Shown here piece by piece: positions 9,801 through 18,900 of a DNA stretch of 64,000 nucleotides; the first letter of the stretch is position 1; every line of letters starts with the position of its first letter. The notes below the pieces were generated by a model. The model saw nothing but the letters and a program-made list of their open reading frames with translations, did not search any database and was not told the DNA's origin. Made by a program: the position numbers and the translations under genes. The DNA lies in assembly GCA_904063045.1 (NCBI GenBank), contig CAJFCJ010000003.1, positions 1,116,001 to 1,180,000 of the forward strand. The letters run 5' to 3'. Source of the DNA: Dimorphilus gyrociliatus (taxonomy: Eukaryota > Animalia > Annelida).

Positions 9801-12240
9801 GATAGTAGTACTAAATTGTAAAAGAAACAAAATACCTATAAATACTATCCACACAATATAGGTAAACGTTCGATATCTGGGGTTTTTAATTATTTCATTT
9901 ATTGATCCTTAAGAATTCTTAATAGAATGTACTACATTTAGACTAAGAATAAATTTTCCGTATCTATCTATACATTTATATGAATATGGTCATTTTACTG
10001 GGTCTTCCGTTAGCCTAGTTAGTTTCGTAGGTTACTTTTTTTTTCACAGAAAAGATACTTTTCGCAAGTAGTGTTCTTATGGGATACGTTATACTAGACA
10101 TTGTACAGTGTAGTATGAAAGACGCTCTTACTTTTTCATTTTATCCTAAAGATTACTATTTATTGCTTTTAAATTACCATTTCAAAGCGTCTATTTTGCA
10201 CCGAAGCCACTTTACTTTATATTTTCTTACTCTTTGCGTCGCTTTCCAAAAAAATTGTAGACAGGAAACGATACTTTTCAATAATATTTTATAATACAAG
10301 CGTTCATAATGAAAATGTACTATTGTTTACATTTACTCCTGTAATACAAGTATAGTTGATTTTCTAACTATTCAAATATAAATATTGTTTACAAACAAGC
10401 AGGATATATGAAAATGTTAACATTTCTTGTTAAACCATTTAGCGTTTTAAGTAAGAGTTCATCGTTGATTAAATTACTCATAATTTTCAATTGTTCTTCT
10501 ATGTGTTATCATCTCTTTCTTATGTTATTAATATTGTCAATAACATATCAAGTTCTCACTTTTTTGTTTATGCTATTCGATCAATGAATATAAACATTAC
10601 AAATTTTCTCTTTATCACACTCCATCCTACTAACTATATGATATTAGGACTGCCAACTCTGTTCACTAATGATGTTCAACGTCTTATATAAATCTGATCA
10701 GCCGTACGTACATATTTCATAAGGATAAGCTCTTTCTTTAAAATCAATATTATTCAAGTACTACTAAGTTATTTAAGCCTTTGCATATTCAGTAGGATCC
10801 ATATTTGATATAGCTTTTTTAAAAAGCATATATTCACAGGAATTGGAAGATAGTTTGTGGTCGTACATTCTTGAATTTCTTTCTGAATACACTTTTCAGT
10901 TCTGATAGCTGCAATCCTTTTGCACAGTAATGGACTTGATAGGACAATGTTCTTATGACCTTATCTTTAAGAAACTTTTAGAAGTATTTCCTCTATCCGT
11001 ATTAGCCTATTAGCCTAGTGTAACAAATTAATTGAATTATACCTAATGAATGATATAAGCTGGATGATTATTTTATCTATTTTATAACAACATATATACA
11101 TAGATGTATTGAATAAGATCTATTGAAAACGGTAAGATATATGCATATCATGCATAAAACACTGTATCTTGCTTATATACTATACTTTCTATAGTTAGCT
11201 GTGTATTGCAATCGTCGGTTTTATAATAAAGTCTTTTAATTGATTACAACTGCTAGTTAGACGTTGAAATAAAAAACAGGACGTTTTAACATAATGGATT
11301 AGCGATCTCTTTATTTCAATACGATTTATTGTTCTTTGGACAGATAGTATTCATTATTTATAATAAAATATATATTTTCTTATTTTTTTCTTGATATATA
11401 GTCATGTAAGCGAACCTATTATCTTCACTGTATAGGTCTTATTATAAAGAAACTCTATAAACGTTATATTTGTTTGTTTTACTATTCAAAAAAAAGTGTC
11501 AATATAAATCTTTTTTAATATAAAAAGAAGAGAGAAATTCTCTTATATTAAAGATTAAACAGAATATTATTTTTCAAGAAATGTATAATAATCCCGTTTT
11601 AGAATTATCTAGTAGTCTAGTTAAAAAATAGTGCTTACTAGGATTGATCTATTATTAATCAATGGTTAAATAAAGAACGTAAATAGAACAATTATTATAC
11701 TGAACTCTATTATACAATATGACAAAGTATATCATATGAAATATGCGCATTTTTTATTTTGCAAAATGACAAGACCTTTATCTAAATTATGAGACAGAGA
11801 AAGAAAAAAAATTCCAACTTTCTCTTCCTGTAATATTATAAAAAGAAGTCATTCTCGTCTGTAATCCAAGATAATTATTATGAAATATTATAGAGAAATT
11901 TTTATTATTCTATACTAGCTTAGAACAATATTATGTCACTTAAAGTTCAATTTTTGAAGATTATATAGAAAAGCTGTATATTAATCAGTCTATAATATAC
12001 AATAAAAGATATTAAATAAGGAAATATGTTGTATTTATTATATTTAAGAATAAAAAAATATGTAATAATTATTAATGTCCTTAAAGTTTTCATCCAGGTA
12101 ATTAATTATCTAACCTTGAGAAGGAGATTAAGAAGAAAAGAGGGAGAAATACAATGAAAATTGATTTCTTTAGTACTTAATTTAATTCTTTTACCTACCT
12201 TTGTCTTTTGCTTCTAACTTCGTTGTGTGCATATGTATTT

Positions 12241-12290
12241 ATGTGTATGTATGTATGTATGCATGTATGTATGCATGTATGTATGAATGT
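12241..12290. repeat. Imperfect (ATGT)n tetranucleotide repeat
   Basis: atgtgtatgtatgtatgtatgcatgtatgtatgcatgtatgtatgaatgt; source of the spurious ORFs 12201-12437 and 12208-12405. Confidence 0.85.
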
Positions 12291-12828
12291 ATATACTGTA
12301 CATATGTTTGTATATATACATCTCTCTCTCTGTCTCTCTCTCTTCTATTTCTCTCGTCAATTTCACAATACATCAATATATCCATATCATTTTCTATTGT
12401 CTTAGTTGATATCAATACGATATATGTATTTATATAGTATGACTAATGTTAATGAATTAATACTAACTCCAATCTACAATTGCTAATTACCATAAACTAT
12501 TATTATTTTCATTTATACTGTATATAAAGTATCTATTTGATTTAGTTTCTTTAAACGTTTATTTGCAAAAATTAAATGATAATAAAATAGAATTAAAGTG
12601 ACTTTTATCATTCTGTTTTGTTTTTTTTTTTAAAAAAACAAAACGAACCAGAAACAAATACATTCAATTTTTTACAAGTAATCGATCACCACCTTTTCTC
12701 TTTTCCTTTTTATTTTTAATATATTCTGCCGATGATTTACTTTTGAGCATTCAATGGTTATAAAAAAATATTGTTATTTTAATAGTTTTTGTCTATCGTC
12801 GTTTGATTTAATGTATATTTCTCAATTG

Positions 12829-15800
12829 TTATGGAGTATATGCAGGAGGGGGATCGCTGTGGACGGGTGGCATGAGATTAATTGGGTTAGATCCGTGACA
12901 GGAGCTACAGGATTGTCTTGGATTTATTCCTTCACCATCATTAGTAGAACTATTTCGTCTACTTTGGCTTTCTGCTATTACTTCTTCGTAATCTGTTTAG
13001 AAAAGTAAATGAATATACTATATATTATATTGACTACATATAATATAGACTTTTACAATATTAGTCCAGAACAAGTATTTAACACTTACCTGGAGGTTTT
13101 ATTATAGATATTGGAGTATCTGGATAATAGTTAGGCAATTGGCTTTGATCATCCAGTGTATTCCCATTGTTATTATTACGATTCTGTTCATCAGGTACCA
13201 CAGACTATAATTTTAATAGAGAAAACATTGAATATTTACATTACTTATTGTACGTAAACTATGTAGATAAATACTAATAAAAGTAGCATTTTATTATTAT
13301 TTTCTTACCTGTAAAGAAGATTTATAATAACTAATTAAAATCATAGAAGCGATTCCAATCATAAAATTAATAATGCATAATATCATAGAAGCCCATAGCA
13401 GGGATTGAAATCTACCTTCAATTTCACCACAAGATTTCACACCCTGATATTCACTAGATTGTGTCGCTAAACTGAAAAAGAAGAAGAATCAATTGGTACT
13501 ATAAATAGGAATAAGTAAATACAAGTATAAATATATAGATCAATGTAGCCTGCATAAATTGTTTTTAAACAAGAAAAATATTGTTTTCATTCGCTATATT
13601 TAGAATTCTTTCTCTTTTCTATATTACTTAACTTTGACCTTTTACTCTCTGTTGTTTTTTTTTTCTATCCTTTAATTAAACAAATTAATTTAAAAATGAT
13701 CGATGCAAATGAAGCTCTTTATCATTTTCAAAATTAATAGAAATGTGGAGGAATAAAAGAACTAGAAAAGGAGAAGAGATCTCCCTATCGTATTGTTTAC
13801 TTCATTCCCCATCTCTCTTTACGTAAATTGTATTCATATAAACACACTCGGTCGTCTCTAATATTAATAATAAGTAGCTTTTAAGGATAGGCTTACCAGA
13901 ATTTCAGATAAATAATTCATATTTACCATTTTCAGACTACCTTTACAAGATAAATGTATTAATCTGAACAGGCCTGTATATCATATTATAAAGCTAGCAG
14001 GACATTGATCTATATAAATAACCTTGAACAGTTAACGGGAAATTATAGGAGAAGCTCGAGTAATAAAGAAAAATTCTAGAGTAAGCGGTATTTCAAGCTT
14101 TAGATAAATGTTACAGTAGAGACAGGATCTGGAACTTTTGACCATTTAGTACTTACGAAACTGTTTTTTCACATTTTTGCTTTCTATGTACGTAACAGCA
14201 AAAGCAGGTATCAGCTTTAATAGTTAGTTTGCAAGAGCTAATTAGTTGAGTTTGTTGACAGAAGGTAGTTCCACCTTGAAGAGCGTAAGCGCACTGGTTA
14301 AAGTCAGTAGTCTGAAGTAAGATGATTAGAATAAAGGAGGTTATTAAGAATCAACAATAAAGCAAATAGAGAGTTTATAAATCTACATACACCCTTTATA
14401 TTGAATTGTTAATGCGAATGGAGGAAATGATTATGAAAAAATATTATTTGCTGAACTATTGCTCAAAGATTTTATTCGCTCGTTTTTAACGATGAAATGA
14501 AAGATAGAATAAAACTAAACATAAATCAAAAAAATGAAAAAATAAACAGGCTCTTACTGAGCAATCGCGGAACACTTATTTTTTCGGTATACTGGGCAAC
14601 AGAAGCAAGTTTCTCCCTCTACATCAGCTGAACACTTTTCACTTCCGCAGTAGATAGGAGATTTTTTATCGTAGTATTTGCAGTCATAAAAATCGATTCT
14701 CTTTAAATAATATAATGAAATATATTACATATGTAGAAGTTATTATCTTCTTTGTCGTTATTTTCAAAATGCTAAGAACTAATAAACACCTCCACTACCA
14801 TTAAAAGAAAGAAAAACATGCAAGCGTATAGGTTAAGAAGTAAGAGAACAAGAGAAATATAAAGAAATAAAGACGTCTTTTTCAAACTGCGAGCTTATAC
14901 TCTTTAAAAGGAAAAGCGTATTTCTTGGAAAAGAATTTCTTAAGTATCGTCTTTCAACAATTGAATTTTATAGCTAAAGAGAAGTGTTAGACACTGTTAT
15001 TCACGAGCCTATAATGATTCAATTGAATTAATGAATTCGATAATACTAAAATAAATTTATAAATAATGAATAAGATAGAAAAAAAGAAGTATTAACTTTA
15101 TAATTTTCATAATGGATCCTAATGAATATAGAGGAAAAGAGGTAGAAAGGTTGGAATAAAAGACAGTGGAATAGTAAAAATATAATAATTATATACAAAG
15201 ACGTGAACTGAACACAAAAAAACAAAAAAACAAAACTAGGACTTACAGGGATTATTATTAATTAATAAGATTTTTTAATTAGAAGTACATAGAAAAATTG
15301 TTATATATATGAATATATATATAGATCTTCACTTACTGCCACGTGACCGGCTTCTACTCCGTCGACTATTCCGCCGATGAAAGCCATAATTAGGCCTAAA
15401 GCGTTCAATACCAGTCCCCCAATTAACTAATAAAAAAATATAGATATTAAAAAGAGAAGTGACCATCGATTAAGACTTAACGAGGAGAATTGAATATTTT
15501 TTGTAATATTTCTCTGTTGTTCTCTCTCGTATATAAATTATATGAACTTGTTAATGATAAAATTTCCTTACCCATGCCTTCCCTTTTGGATAAGAAGATA
15601 AACCAACTATAAATAAAATTGTAGCTAACCCCATCTGCAAATAGTATAATAATATATTAAGTAAAATGTCTTCTCTTTAATACGAACAGCTATATGGGGC
15701 CAAAATGATCCGGCTCTTATATTATCCGTCGTCGTATAGGCTGCTAAGCCAATAGCAAAACCCATAATAGATATAGTCAGTTGAGTAAGACTGCATATGT

Positions 15801-15970
15801 AGGCTCTGCTCCTTTTATTAATAACTTTTGAGAGAAACAATAAACCAAGTTAGAGAGTTTTCATGAAAATGACTTTATTCCAAACCTGGTTTTGGTACAA
15901 TGACTTCAGGTTCAATTTGTATCTGTCTCCTTAGTTGGGGAAGAGGTCTTCTAACAGAAATATCTTGCAT
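12829..15970 (-). CDS. TMEM255: TMEM255 (FAM70)-like four-TM protein, 319 aa (exon A) or 323 aa (exon B)
   Basis: Exons (minus) 15970-15886, 15824-15688, 15634-15572, 15426-15337, [14700-14558 or 14311-14157], 13471-13309, 13204-13090, 12992-12829; all GT-AG and frame-consistent; in-frame stop upstream of ATG. Motifs IGLAAYTTTDNIRAGSFWP, GGIVDGVEA, TCFCC, EYQGVKSC..LLWASMIL and terminal PPAYTP* parallel vertebrate TMEM255 (GLAATTRTENV, IVDGVFA, TCFCC, EYIDVSSC..LLWSA, PPPYSP). Confidence 0.85.
14157..14311 (-). CDS. TMEM255: TMEM255 alternative exon B (mutually exclusive)
   Basis: cttcag|ACT...TC|gtaagt, 155 nt, phase 0 to 2; TTDFNQCAYALQGGTTFCQQTQLISSCKLTIKADTCFCCYVHRKQKCEKTV(S). Confidence 0.85.
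14558..14700 (-). CDS. TMEM255: TMEM255 alternative exon A (mutually exclusive)
   Basis: tttaaag|AGA...CA|gtaaga, 143 nt, phase 0 to 2; RIDFYDCKYYDKKSPIYCGSEKCSADVEGETCFCCPVYRKNKCSAIA(H). Confidence 0.85.
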
Positions 15971-18900
15971 GTCTTTTGCCCTTGAGCTCTCACACGTTTT
16001 TAAAAAATTACGTAGTTAGCAGATTCTTTACGCAATACTGCTTGTGAAAGTGGCTTTTCTCTCTGTTGATTTCTCTACTTAAAATATAGCTGTTCAAACT
16101 AGAACTGCCAACGGAAAAAGCATTTGTTAAGAGAATAGCAGAATTAGTGAAAGATTACTTTAAAGAATTTTACCTTAAAATTATGGCCCGTTGAAATTGT
16201 AAAAATCCAAATCAGGTGATTAGATAGCCAATGATGTATAATTTGAGAACTTTGAAGAATAACTGAGTGAAAGACGACAAGGAGAAAGAGTTCAGTATAA
16301 GATAAAGTTGAGAAAATCCCAGAAATAAAAGAAACGAAGAGGGTTGAGGGAGAAAAATGACTATTAATGAAGTATTATCCTTTTATTCAAATTATAAAAA
16401 AATAGAGAAATCCAATGTTATGTTTTTTCATACACTGTCAAATTGAAAAACCAAACTACGTTCGAACTTGGATAGGTGAAACTAATAATAAGAGTAATAA
16501 TAATAATAATAGAAGTCTACTGCTTTTAACCAACTGATTATGTATTGATGAAAGCTATTAGCCGTATAGAAAACGGCCATGTTTGTCGGCTATGACGACC
16601 GAATAAACAAATCTCGTTTGAAAGAGTTCATATAGAAAATCGAATGCGACAATGCTTAAATGGGTTTATGGAAAATTTTACGCCAATTGTTTAGCTGCTA
16701 AAATATTGATGATACTGAATAAAAATTATTTAAAATTTCATACAGCCTTCTTAAATAATCCAAGTATTTTTTTTTCTTCACATCATCCTACAATCTCTTC
16801 CCTTTTATCTGTAAAGGTTATATATCTATATGTGTAATTTTTAATGTCTAAATTAACAATGCATAACTTCCGACCAATTGAATAAATAATGCATATCTAC
16901 ATAATAGTTTAATATTTGATTCATATATGTATATACATACTAATATATATGGCATAGTCTATCCATATATATATATATACTAATATATATATATATATAT
17001 ACTGTATATACTAATACATAATAATGCATATCTTTCCTGCTTTATTAATCTTGTTTTATTTTTGTCGGCGTCTCTTTTCACCTTCAATTTCTTATTCTTT
17101 TAGTGTGTATTGTCAAATATGCTGTATAATTTATATGATACAAGGGCGTCTATTTCCTTTGCAATTTCGACAGATAGATGGTATAGAAATATAATTACTC
17201 TTCTTTGAAATATATTTAAGCTGGGTGATCATGATCAAAATGCTTTATAACTACATCGGAATGGCATTCCTTAAAACTTGAGTTAATACATAATGTCTAG
17301 TTAATTCGGAATAACTTTTTTATTCGTATAGCATTTCTTTTTTCTATGAATTCTATAGAAAGAAGAAAGAATAAAAGACTTATTATTAAGGAAAAGTGAC
17401 ATAGGTAAAAAAGAAATGTTTTATGAAAACCATTAGAAGATTTAGAGAAAGACAGAGAGAAAGAGAGATGAGAGAGAAACAGACAAGGAAAATGAGAGAG
17501 GTGATGTTCTAATTTATCAACCGTGACTCTACCTGTATGCTTCCTTTCACTATAATTTATCGTATTCATGACGTAGGGTTTGTTTTAGCTTTCAAATTTG
17601 AAAGATGAGAAACTGTATACATAGCTACTATACATAGATTATACAAATTAAGTATATATAAATATAACCTATACAGACGTCTAAACAAGGTATAATTATA
17701 TATTTAAGTTTTATATAAAAACTAATGATGTTATAGTAGCAAATATGCATATAAGGCGAAAAACTATTGCATCTGCTAAATATTATGTCAATTATTACAT
17801 AATATAGAAATATAAAATGTACATTGCATGTATAGTATTTTTATCTCTTTTTTACAACTGTTTCAAGTTCAGAAGAAATAATCTACTGTGGTCGTTAACC
17901 AGATCACTATTTAGTTCTCTTTCATTAATACTCATTCTCTACTTGCCTAAGTACGTTTTTGGATTGTTTTAACAGTACGTTCACCAATTAACAGCAATAT
18001 GGAAATAGTTCATATTTTTTCCTATTAATCCTATTTCACATCTTTCAAAGGCGATTACAGTGCAGCTTTCCTATATTCGCCTTAAGAAAAACTACTTAAC
18101 TATTTATCTAAAGATATAATTTAACCACATTCAATGTAATATTTATTAGTTTTACTTATTAATAGGAAGATTTCATAAGTTTTTTATTCAATTTACCTTT
18201 TTGAAAGAAAAAATCATTTATTCTTTTTCTTCTTTTATTTTAATGAAATCCAAAAAAACTGTATTCCATATTTCATTGATAAGTTTCTTAATTAAATCCT
18301 TCGTAGCGCCATCTGAATTCTTTTCAACCTTTCTAATTAAATTTGCAACAAAACTTAACAAACAATGTAGAAATATGTGTTTTGTTTGAACCTATTTCCT
18401 TGAAATCTTAAGTAATCTAGCTGTACTTTACCTAGTAGTAGTAATTTAGTAAAAATTTAGGAAAAGTTCAATAAACCTCTTTTTGAAATCATTTTTCGAT
18501 TTTATAAGTAAAATCGAAAATGAAACTACACCAAATAAGAAGAATCGATAATTTGCACATAAAATTCGTTTAGAGTGAGTTGTGTTGTCTAAATAAAATC
18601 ATATAAACACAAATTAAACTCACATTTTTCACATTGACTGTTTTGAAAATCTATTCAAATATCGCAAAAAAAAAAAACATAACTCCATTTGTTTCTTAGT
18701 TTTTTTTCTTTTTTTTATGTAATGTTTGTTAGAACTCTGTAAAGAGAAAAAAAATACAAAATAATCGCCAAATTTCTAATAAATGATCAAAGTAATGACT
18801 GATAACTGCAAAATCTGTAGCTAAAAATATATACAGTATTCATATACGAGAGTATACTTTTATATATACTGCATATATGATTAATCTTAATTAAATGTAA

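Follow-up and report, generated by a model that had tools for sequence, protein, structure and literature searches.

A tandem pair of loop exons in the TMEM255 gene of Dimorphilus gyrociliatus, very probably spliced one per mRNA

The minus-strand TMEM255/FAM70 gene of the annelid Dimorphilus gyrociliatus carries two adjacent homologous exons, A and B, that very probably form a tandem-duplicated, mutually exclusive pair, with one of the two present in each mRNA seen and the choice between them switching the outer loop of the encoded protein. The gene lies in a stretch of 64,000 nucleotides (nt) of contig CAJFCJ010000003.1 (positions 1,116,001 to 1,180,000), which was analysed as a whole and is referred to here as the window. 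It corresponds to DgyrCDS2165 in the public annotation and looks single-copy. TMEM255 proteins are conserved across bilaterians and poorly understood. Scattered reports on them concern binding of Wnt5a in mouse oocytes and a role as a p53 target. An earlier reading of the letters of this stretch, referred to as the original prediction, had assigned the gene to TMEM255 and had proposed that A and B are interchangeable; it had placed both exons on the minus strand, A at 14700..14558 (143 nt) and B at 14311..14157 (155 nt). These coordinates and lengths are correct, and so is the family assignment. The Pfam FAM70 profile (PF14967) is matched in collinear order by five translated exon pieces at profile positions 17-61, 83-109, 134-170 and 174-219, the interval at about 134-170 being matched by both exon A and exon B. 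A protein search with the constitutive downstream exon e7 gave a 100% identical match to P0001 (DgyrCDS2165, 234 residues), which itself carries PF14967.

The features of the gene are given below in window positions, in the order of transcription, TM standing for transmembrane segment and UTR for untranslated region.

12829..15970, minus strand: coding region of TMEM255/FAM70, ATG at 15970, stop codon 12831-12829 (translation and spliced contigs)
16400+..16174, minus strand: 5' UTR exon (spliced contigs)
15886..16104, minus strand: exon e2, 5' UTR, start codon and the N-terminal 28 codons (junctions 16174/16104 and 15886/15824; translation)
15688..15824, minus strand: exon e3, TM1 and the start of TM2 (junctions; FAM70 positions 17-61)
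15572..15634, minus strand: exon e4, remainder of TM2 and a short inner loop (junctions 15688/15634 and 15572/15426)
15337..15426, minus strand: exon e5, constitutive upstream exon, TM3, ending in phase 0 (junctions 15337>14700 and 15337>14311; FAM70 positions 83-109)
14701..15336, minus strand: intron 1, 636 nt, GT..AG (junction table)
14558..14700, minus strand: exon A, 143 nt (47 codons and 2 nt), apparently the divergent copy (joined to e5 and e7 in run X2)
14312..14557, minus strand: intron 2, 246 nt, between A and B (sequence; unspliced X2 contig 14282-14587)
14157..14311, minus strand: exon B, 155 nt (51 codons and 2 nt), apparently the canonical copy and the annotated form (joined to e5 and e7 in X2, to e5 in run X1)
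13472..14156, minus strand: intron 3, 685 nt, GT..AG (junctions)
13309..13471, minus strand: exon e7, constitutive downstream exon, eighth loop cysteine and TM4 (translation; FAM70 positions 174-219)
13090..13204, minus strand: exon e8, cytoplasmic tail, missing from the public model (junctions 13309/13204 in X1 and X2, 13090/12992 in X2)
12688..12992, minus strand: exon e9, end of the tail with a PPPAY (PY-type) motif, stop codon and 3' UTR (junctions; translation)

All introns of the gene are of the GT..AG type and were confirmed by spliced contigs, the constitutive ones being 53-145 nt long. Exon-by-exon translation gives a protein of 319 residues with exon A and of 323 residues with exon B.

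The translation of exon A is RIDFYDCKYYDKKSPIYCGSEKCSADVEGETCFCCPVYRKNKCSAIA and that of exon B is TTDFNQCAYALQGGTTFCQQTQLISSCKLTIKADTCFCCYVHRKQKCEKTV. Both contain seven cysteines on the shared skeleton DF..C-x10-C-x4/8-C-x8-CFCC.V.RK.KC, and most other residues are different, as had been described from the letters (36% amino-acid identity, BLASTP E 1e-9). Each exon has an AG acceptor behind a pyrimidine-rich tract and a GTAAG donor. In tblastn searches of the whole 64-kb window with A or B, the sole match was the other exon (E 4e-8) and no third copy of the loop exon was found. Exon e5 stops at 15337 with a complete codon (phase 0), 2 nt are left over at the end of either alternative exon, and the split codon is closed by the first base of e7 (13471) to give His after A and Ser after B; translation and this first base confirm that both exons run from phase 0 to phase 2. 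The two exons cannot be combined or omitted without cost to the frame. By frame arithmetic, double inclusion leads to a stop 22 codons into exon B and the skipping of both to a stop 6 codons into e7, in agreement with the earlier claim that both or neither would break the frame.

Evidence from RNA was drawn from assembled contigs of two runs, X1 and X2, which come from separate studies. Run X2 (2017) matches the window at an identity of at least 99% and contains ten spliced junctions of the TMEM255 gene. Its word depths are 180-560 in exons versus 33-72 in introns, and because of the ten spliced junctions and of this higher exon depth X2 is taken for RNA. All four junctions that the original prediction had named for an alternative pair were found in X2 contigs: 15337>14700 (depth 179) and 14558>13471 (234) for exon A, 15337>14311 (225) and 14157>13471 (263) for exon B. 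All four are GT..AG on the minus strand. Splicing to e5 and splicing to e7 are both seen for either exon in this run, contrary to a case in which only one of them is expressed. Neither a junction from A to B (14558>14311) nor one that skips both exons (15337>13471) occurs among the contigs listed, which by their nature cannot prove absence. Run X1 is a 2025 marine metatranscriptome in which four contigs are 90-99% alike to the window. One of them, of 626 nt, joins exon B to e5, e3 and e2, with a stretch of the size of e4 between. Over the TMEM255 gene (window 13094-16384) the differences between X1 and the window are concentrated in the 5' UTR and at the N-terminus. Judging from the X1 transcripts, the environmental sample may have contained another Dimorphilus strain or a sibling species.

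Several points weigh against the reading of A and B as a functional exclusive pair. The records of X2 do not state a library type. A contig tells that a splice form exists, but not that another is missing or how much there is of each, and neither rare double inclusion nor a tissue bias can be judged from such contigs. The junction contigs reach just 29-30 nt on one side, a length that is expected at a bubble of a k=31 de Bruijn assembly graph, and none of those listed spans e5, A and e7 from end to end. Run X1, which is of low depth, gave no sign of exon A. Finally, the step from an exchanged loop to an altered choice of partner, discussed below, is made by analogy only.

The tandem layout could also have been created during assembly, by two alleles or gene copies misplaced one behind the other, a general risk when small genomes are assembled but one to which nothing specific points here. 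Copies A and B are only 36% identical at the protein level and are both spliced to the same flanking exons; moreover, unspliced contigs of X2 (13442-14186, 14282-14587 and 14671-15150) match the assembled layout with no differences. Such an artefact has next to no probability. These unspliced contigs cover the three introns around A and B (window 13442-15150) at about one tenth to one third of the exon depth, and they could represent pre-mRNA, intron retention or DNA carry-over.

One of the two exons follows the family more closely than the other. A glycine that is invariant in the family (G139) is kept in exon B and absent from exon A. The spacer between the second and third cysteines has 8 residues in B and 4 in A, the shortest seen. 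Since both the glycine and the canonical spacer are kept in B and not in A, exon B appears to be the canonical copy and exon A the diverged one. Derived features that the other species do not show are common to both exons, V.RK.KC after CC and short spacers. Of 47 aligned residues 16 are identical, and only 6 of these 16 use the same codon, at a nucleotide identity of 46%; because so few identical residues share their codon and nucleotide identity is so low, the duplication is old, with synonymous sites saturated. The pattern of divergence argues that both A and B have been held by long-term selection at the protein level.

It could be argued instead that exon A is a decaying or neutral duplicate, spliced in by noise, and that the B isoform alone is functional. 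Exon A is the copy that has neither the invariant glycine nor the canonical spacer, the public gene model and run X1 contain B only, and the other species checked have one loop exon. Nevertheless, its frame is intact, its splice sites are good, and even with synonymous sites saturated relative to B it retains its seven cysteines together with the motifs DF and RK.KC, whereas in a neutral copy this old the frame or the cysteines would be lost. The word depths of its junctions in X2 are also of the same order as those of B. Noise splicing of a useless copy is on these grounds considered quite improbable.

The spread of the duplication was assessed at five comparator loci, from Capitella teleta (L001), Owenia fusiformis (L002), an ENA eukaryotic contig (L003), the hemichordate Glandiceps (L004) and the starfish Patiria (L005). 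At each of them the loop is encoded by one exon only, whose boundaries are those found in Dimorphilus. No second loop exon was found at any of them by tblastn with the Dimorphilus loops and the loops of the species itself, nor by a scan for the C-x-C-C motif, and in Capitella the introns flanking the loop exon are too short to hide a second copy. The simplest reading of these comparisons is that the exon was duplicated on the Dimorphilus branch, once the lines leading to Capitella and Owenia had separated from it; alternatively, the second exon may have been lost elsewhere. The original prediction of an old exon duplication is therefore upheld as to age by the saturated synonymous sites, but the single loop exon in five other animal loci makes the pair either lineage-restricted or lost elsewhere. 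On the simplest reading, B would be the ancestral-type copy and A would have diverged after this duplication.

A tree of loop exons was rejected as a means to date the duplication: built on 56 columns, it gave no resolution, and its grouping of A, B and the loop of L003 was weak and carried a long-branch warning. A close relative's genome was sought in metagenome contigs with a protein pattern and with a degenerate DNA pattern for the exon-A motif, and neither gave a match. Word-index protein searches gave, apart from the Dimorphilus protein itself, only a few homologues from deuterostomes. In the ENA contig, at L003:10088-10539, a single open frame (P0002) contains three tandem copies of the TM4 segment FTFLLWSSMALCFINFLVSIATCVLV of the TMEM255 homologue, which might reflect either duplication at this place or faulty assembly.

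The part of the protein that is exchanged was located on an AlphaFold2 model of P0001, i.e. of the B form, made with nine homologues (mean predicted local distance difference test score, pLDDT, 84.6). The model has four long predicted helices (residues 27-60, 70-87, 93-126 and 191-232) and, at residues 133-172 in the segment that links helices 3 and 4, four short strands plus one further helix. Exon B corresponds to residues 126-177. As modelled, the alternative exon supplies almost the whole ordered, beta-rich loop between TM3 and TM4. Its position between the third and fourth hydrophobic segments, proposed from the letters, is borne out by the predicted TM3 helix (93-126) and TM4 helix (191-232). 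Eight loop cysteines (C132, C143, C152, C161, C163, C164, C172 and C191, including the C-x-C-C motif) are invariant in nine TMEM255 proteins from annelids, a hemichordate, a starfish, amphioxus and fishes. Seven of the eight are encoded by the alternative exon, and exon A keeps all seven of these; the eighth, C191, is encoded by the constitutive e7. The loop had been described as a seven-cysteine loop, which is right for each exon, but the conserved loop cysteines number eight. With eight cysteines in the loop, the last of them in e7, four disulfides could form, and A and B would each have to pair with the same constant cysteine. In Branchiostoma lanceolatum, the two annotated TMEM255A isoforms (P0005 and P0009) differ by a stretch of 21 residues that matches the TM2 exon (e4 here), not the loop. 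Skipping of the TM2 exon in amphioxus would leave three helices and flip the downstream topology.

Almost every non-cysteine surface residue differs between A and B. Exon A is highly charged and tyrosine-rich (15 charged residues and 5 tyrosines), and exon B is Q/T-rich (17 Q/T/S/N residues). The two isoforms would accordingly present chemically different outer surfaces on the same membrane core and with the same cytoplasmic PY-motif tail, the outer face of the A isoform being charged, Tyr-rich and built on a shorter hairpin, and that of the B isoform polar and Q/T-rich. Since the swap is confined to the outer loop and leaves the constant parts untouched, and since both scaffolds are preserved while the surface residues differ, the isoforms probably differ in their choice of extracellular or in-membrane partners. 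The different ligands that the original prediction had put forward for the two loops would be a plausible form of this. Mammalian Fam70A binds Wnt5a in oocytes (PMC7309945). A switch that replaces nearly the whole ordered outer loop and keeps core and tail would mark this loop as the functional, partner-facing part of the protein. If this is true, the gene is a natural two-state switch with which binding partners of the TMEM255 loop could be identified, A and B being two matched loop variants for binding screens. In the literature searched, no description of alternative loop exons in TMEM255 was found.

A structural lead comes from the fold of the model. In a Foldseek search, the only matches with E < 0.001 were sarcospan chains of the dystrophin-glycoprotein complex, 9c3c_n (E 8e-5) and 8yt8_S, followed by FcεRIβ, CD20 and tetraspanin-type proteins. 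The P0001 model aligns with 9c3c_n over 165 of 175 residues at a root-mean-square deviation of 2.8 (VIA-align Z 14.6), a fold match that does not establish homology, as four-helix bundles reach high Z by arrangement alone. The sequence profile match between TMEM255 and sarcospan is not significant (E 2.7). Because bundles score high by arrangement and the sequences do not match significantly, the modelled likeness is best treated as one of working alike and not of membership. Sarcospan has a large extracellular loop between TM3 and TM4 (PMC11173052). A literature search for a link between TMEM255 and sarcospan found nothing relevant. The sarcospan-like fold is nonetheless a cheap and testable lead for the whole TMEM255 family. 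A bolder proposal would make TMEM255 a distant relative of sarcospan whose loop docks partners and whose PY tail recruits WW-domain ubiquitin ligases, the lineage-specific switch re-aiming this adaptor at two partners, possibly by tissue; it is speculative and more doubtful than probable.

How one exon is chosen to the exclusion of the other was considered from the introns. Exclusion would most likely be achieved by ordinary splice-site competition or by regulators. Messenger RNAs with stops far upstream of their last junctions are degraded by nonsense-mediated decay. As the stops created by double inclusion and by double skipping fall far upstream of the last junctions, we infer that these products are prone to this decay, which would clear them. 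Steric hindrance of the alpha-tropomyosin type is an unlikely means of exclusion, as the original prediction had reasoned from the length of the spacer intron: intron 2 (14557..14312) does measure 246 nt, and branch-like CTAAT/TTAAT motifs and a pyrimidine tract, as read from the sequence, lie close to the exon B acceptor. Incompatibility between U2 and U12 splice sites was likewise rejected, all three donors being GTAAG and the acceptors AG, with no donor of the ATCC type.

Another candidate is RNA pairing between docking and selector elements, as in insect Dscam or 14-3-3, which would direct the choice between A and B. An element in intron 3 (14002-14026) is complementary to 13522-13546 at 21 of 25 bases, and weakly so to 14338-14358, just upstream of B, and to 15314-15327, after the e5 donor. 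However, both arms of this best 25-nt stem lie in intron 3, and its 21 of 25 pairs were equalled in 2 of 60 Markov simulations of this AT-rich sequence. Duplex energies between introns (RNAduplex, unrestricted) were no better than those of shuffled sequences, with z from -0.2 to +1.6. The search for docking/selector complementarity that the original prediction had proposed found nothing above chance, either in duplex energies against shuffles or in the scan of 25-nt windows, and such pairing is regarded as unlikely to govern the choice.

The gene structure also corrects the public annotation. The first 231 residues of the B isoform read from the window are identical to P0001, which contains exon B and is without exon A. 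The end of P0001, '...SSLQVRK', is a read-through into the intron after e7 (after 13309). Because of this read-through the public gene model is truncated; it is without exon A and without the true C-terminal tail and its PY motif. Two coding exons lie beyond the model (13204-13090 and 12992-12829) and encode a tail of about 90 residues that ends in PPPAY, corresponding to the PPPYS ends of homologues. Exon A and the real C-terminal PY-motif tail are to be added to the public model. Directly downstream of the 3' end of TMEM255 lies a simple repeat of the (CATA/CACA) type (window 12217-12372, minus strand), one frame of which reads HTYMHTYMHTYIH.

The A/B pair can be compared with known systems at the level of the protein and at that of the splicing. 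Within the TMEM255A/B family (FAM70A/B, PF14967), the Dimorphilus protein shares the four TM helices, the eight-cysteine TM3-TM4 loop with C-x-C-C and the C-terminal PPxY-type motif, but the comparators have one loop exon, and exon A of Dimorphilus is atypical of the family in lacking the invariant glycine and in the length of its spacer. The pair is absent from the other annelids checked. The predicted protein resembles sarcospan in its core of four helices and in having its large outer loop between TM3 and TM4, and in sarcospan and CD20 that loop forms an exposed outer face, as would be the case in TMEM255; in contrast to sarcospan and to MS4A/CD20/FcεRIβ, the eight-cysteine pattern is TMEM255's alone. 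Among splicing systems, Dscam and 14-3-3ξ clusters likewise consist of tandem alternative exons with a strict one-of-N choice, whereas TMEM255 has two variants only and no complementarity above chance. Mutually exclusive exons born of tandem duplication are known from muscle myosin heavy chain clusters (PMC3912159), and the a/e exons of COQ-2 in helminths and annelids are mutually exclusive tandem exons as well (PMC7434440). With myosin heavy chain and COQ-2 the TMEM255 pair has in common that adjacent homologous exons of the same phase share their flanks, that exactly one of them keeps the frame and that a structural module is swapped; in the literature searched, this mechanism was not described for the TMEM255 gene or for a disulfide-rich tetraspan loop. 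Overall, the A/B pair is a sound and fairly ordinary case of a known splicing device.

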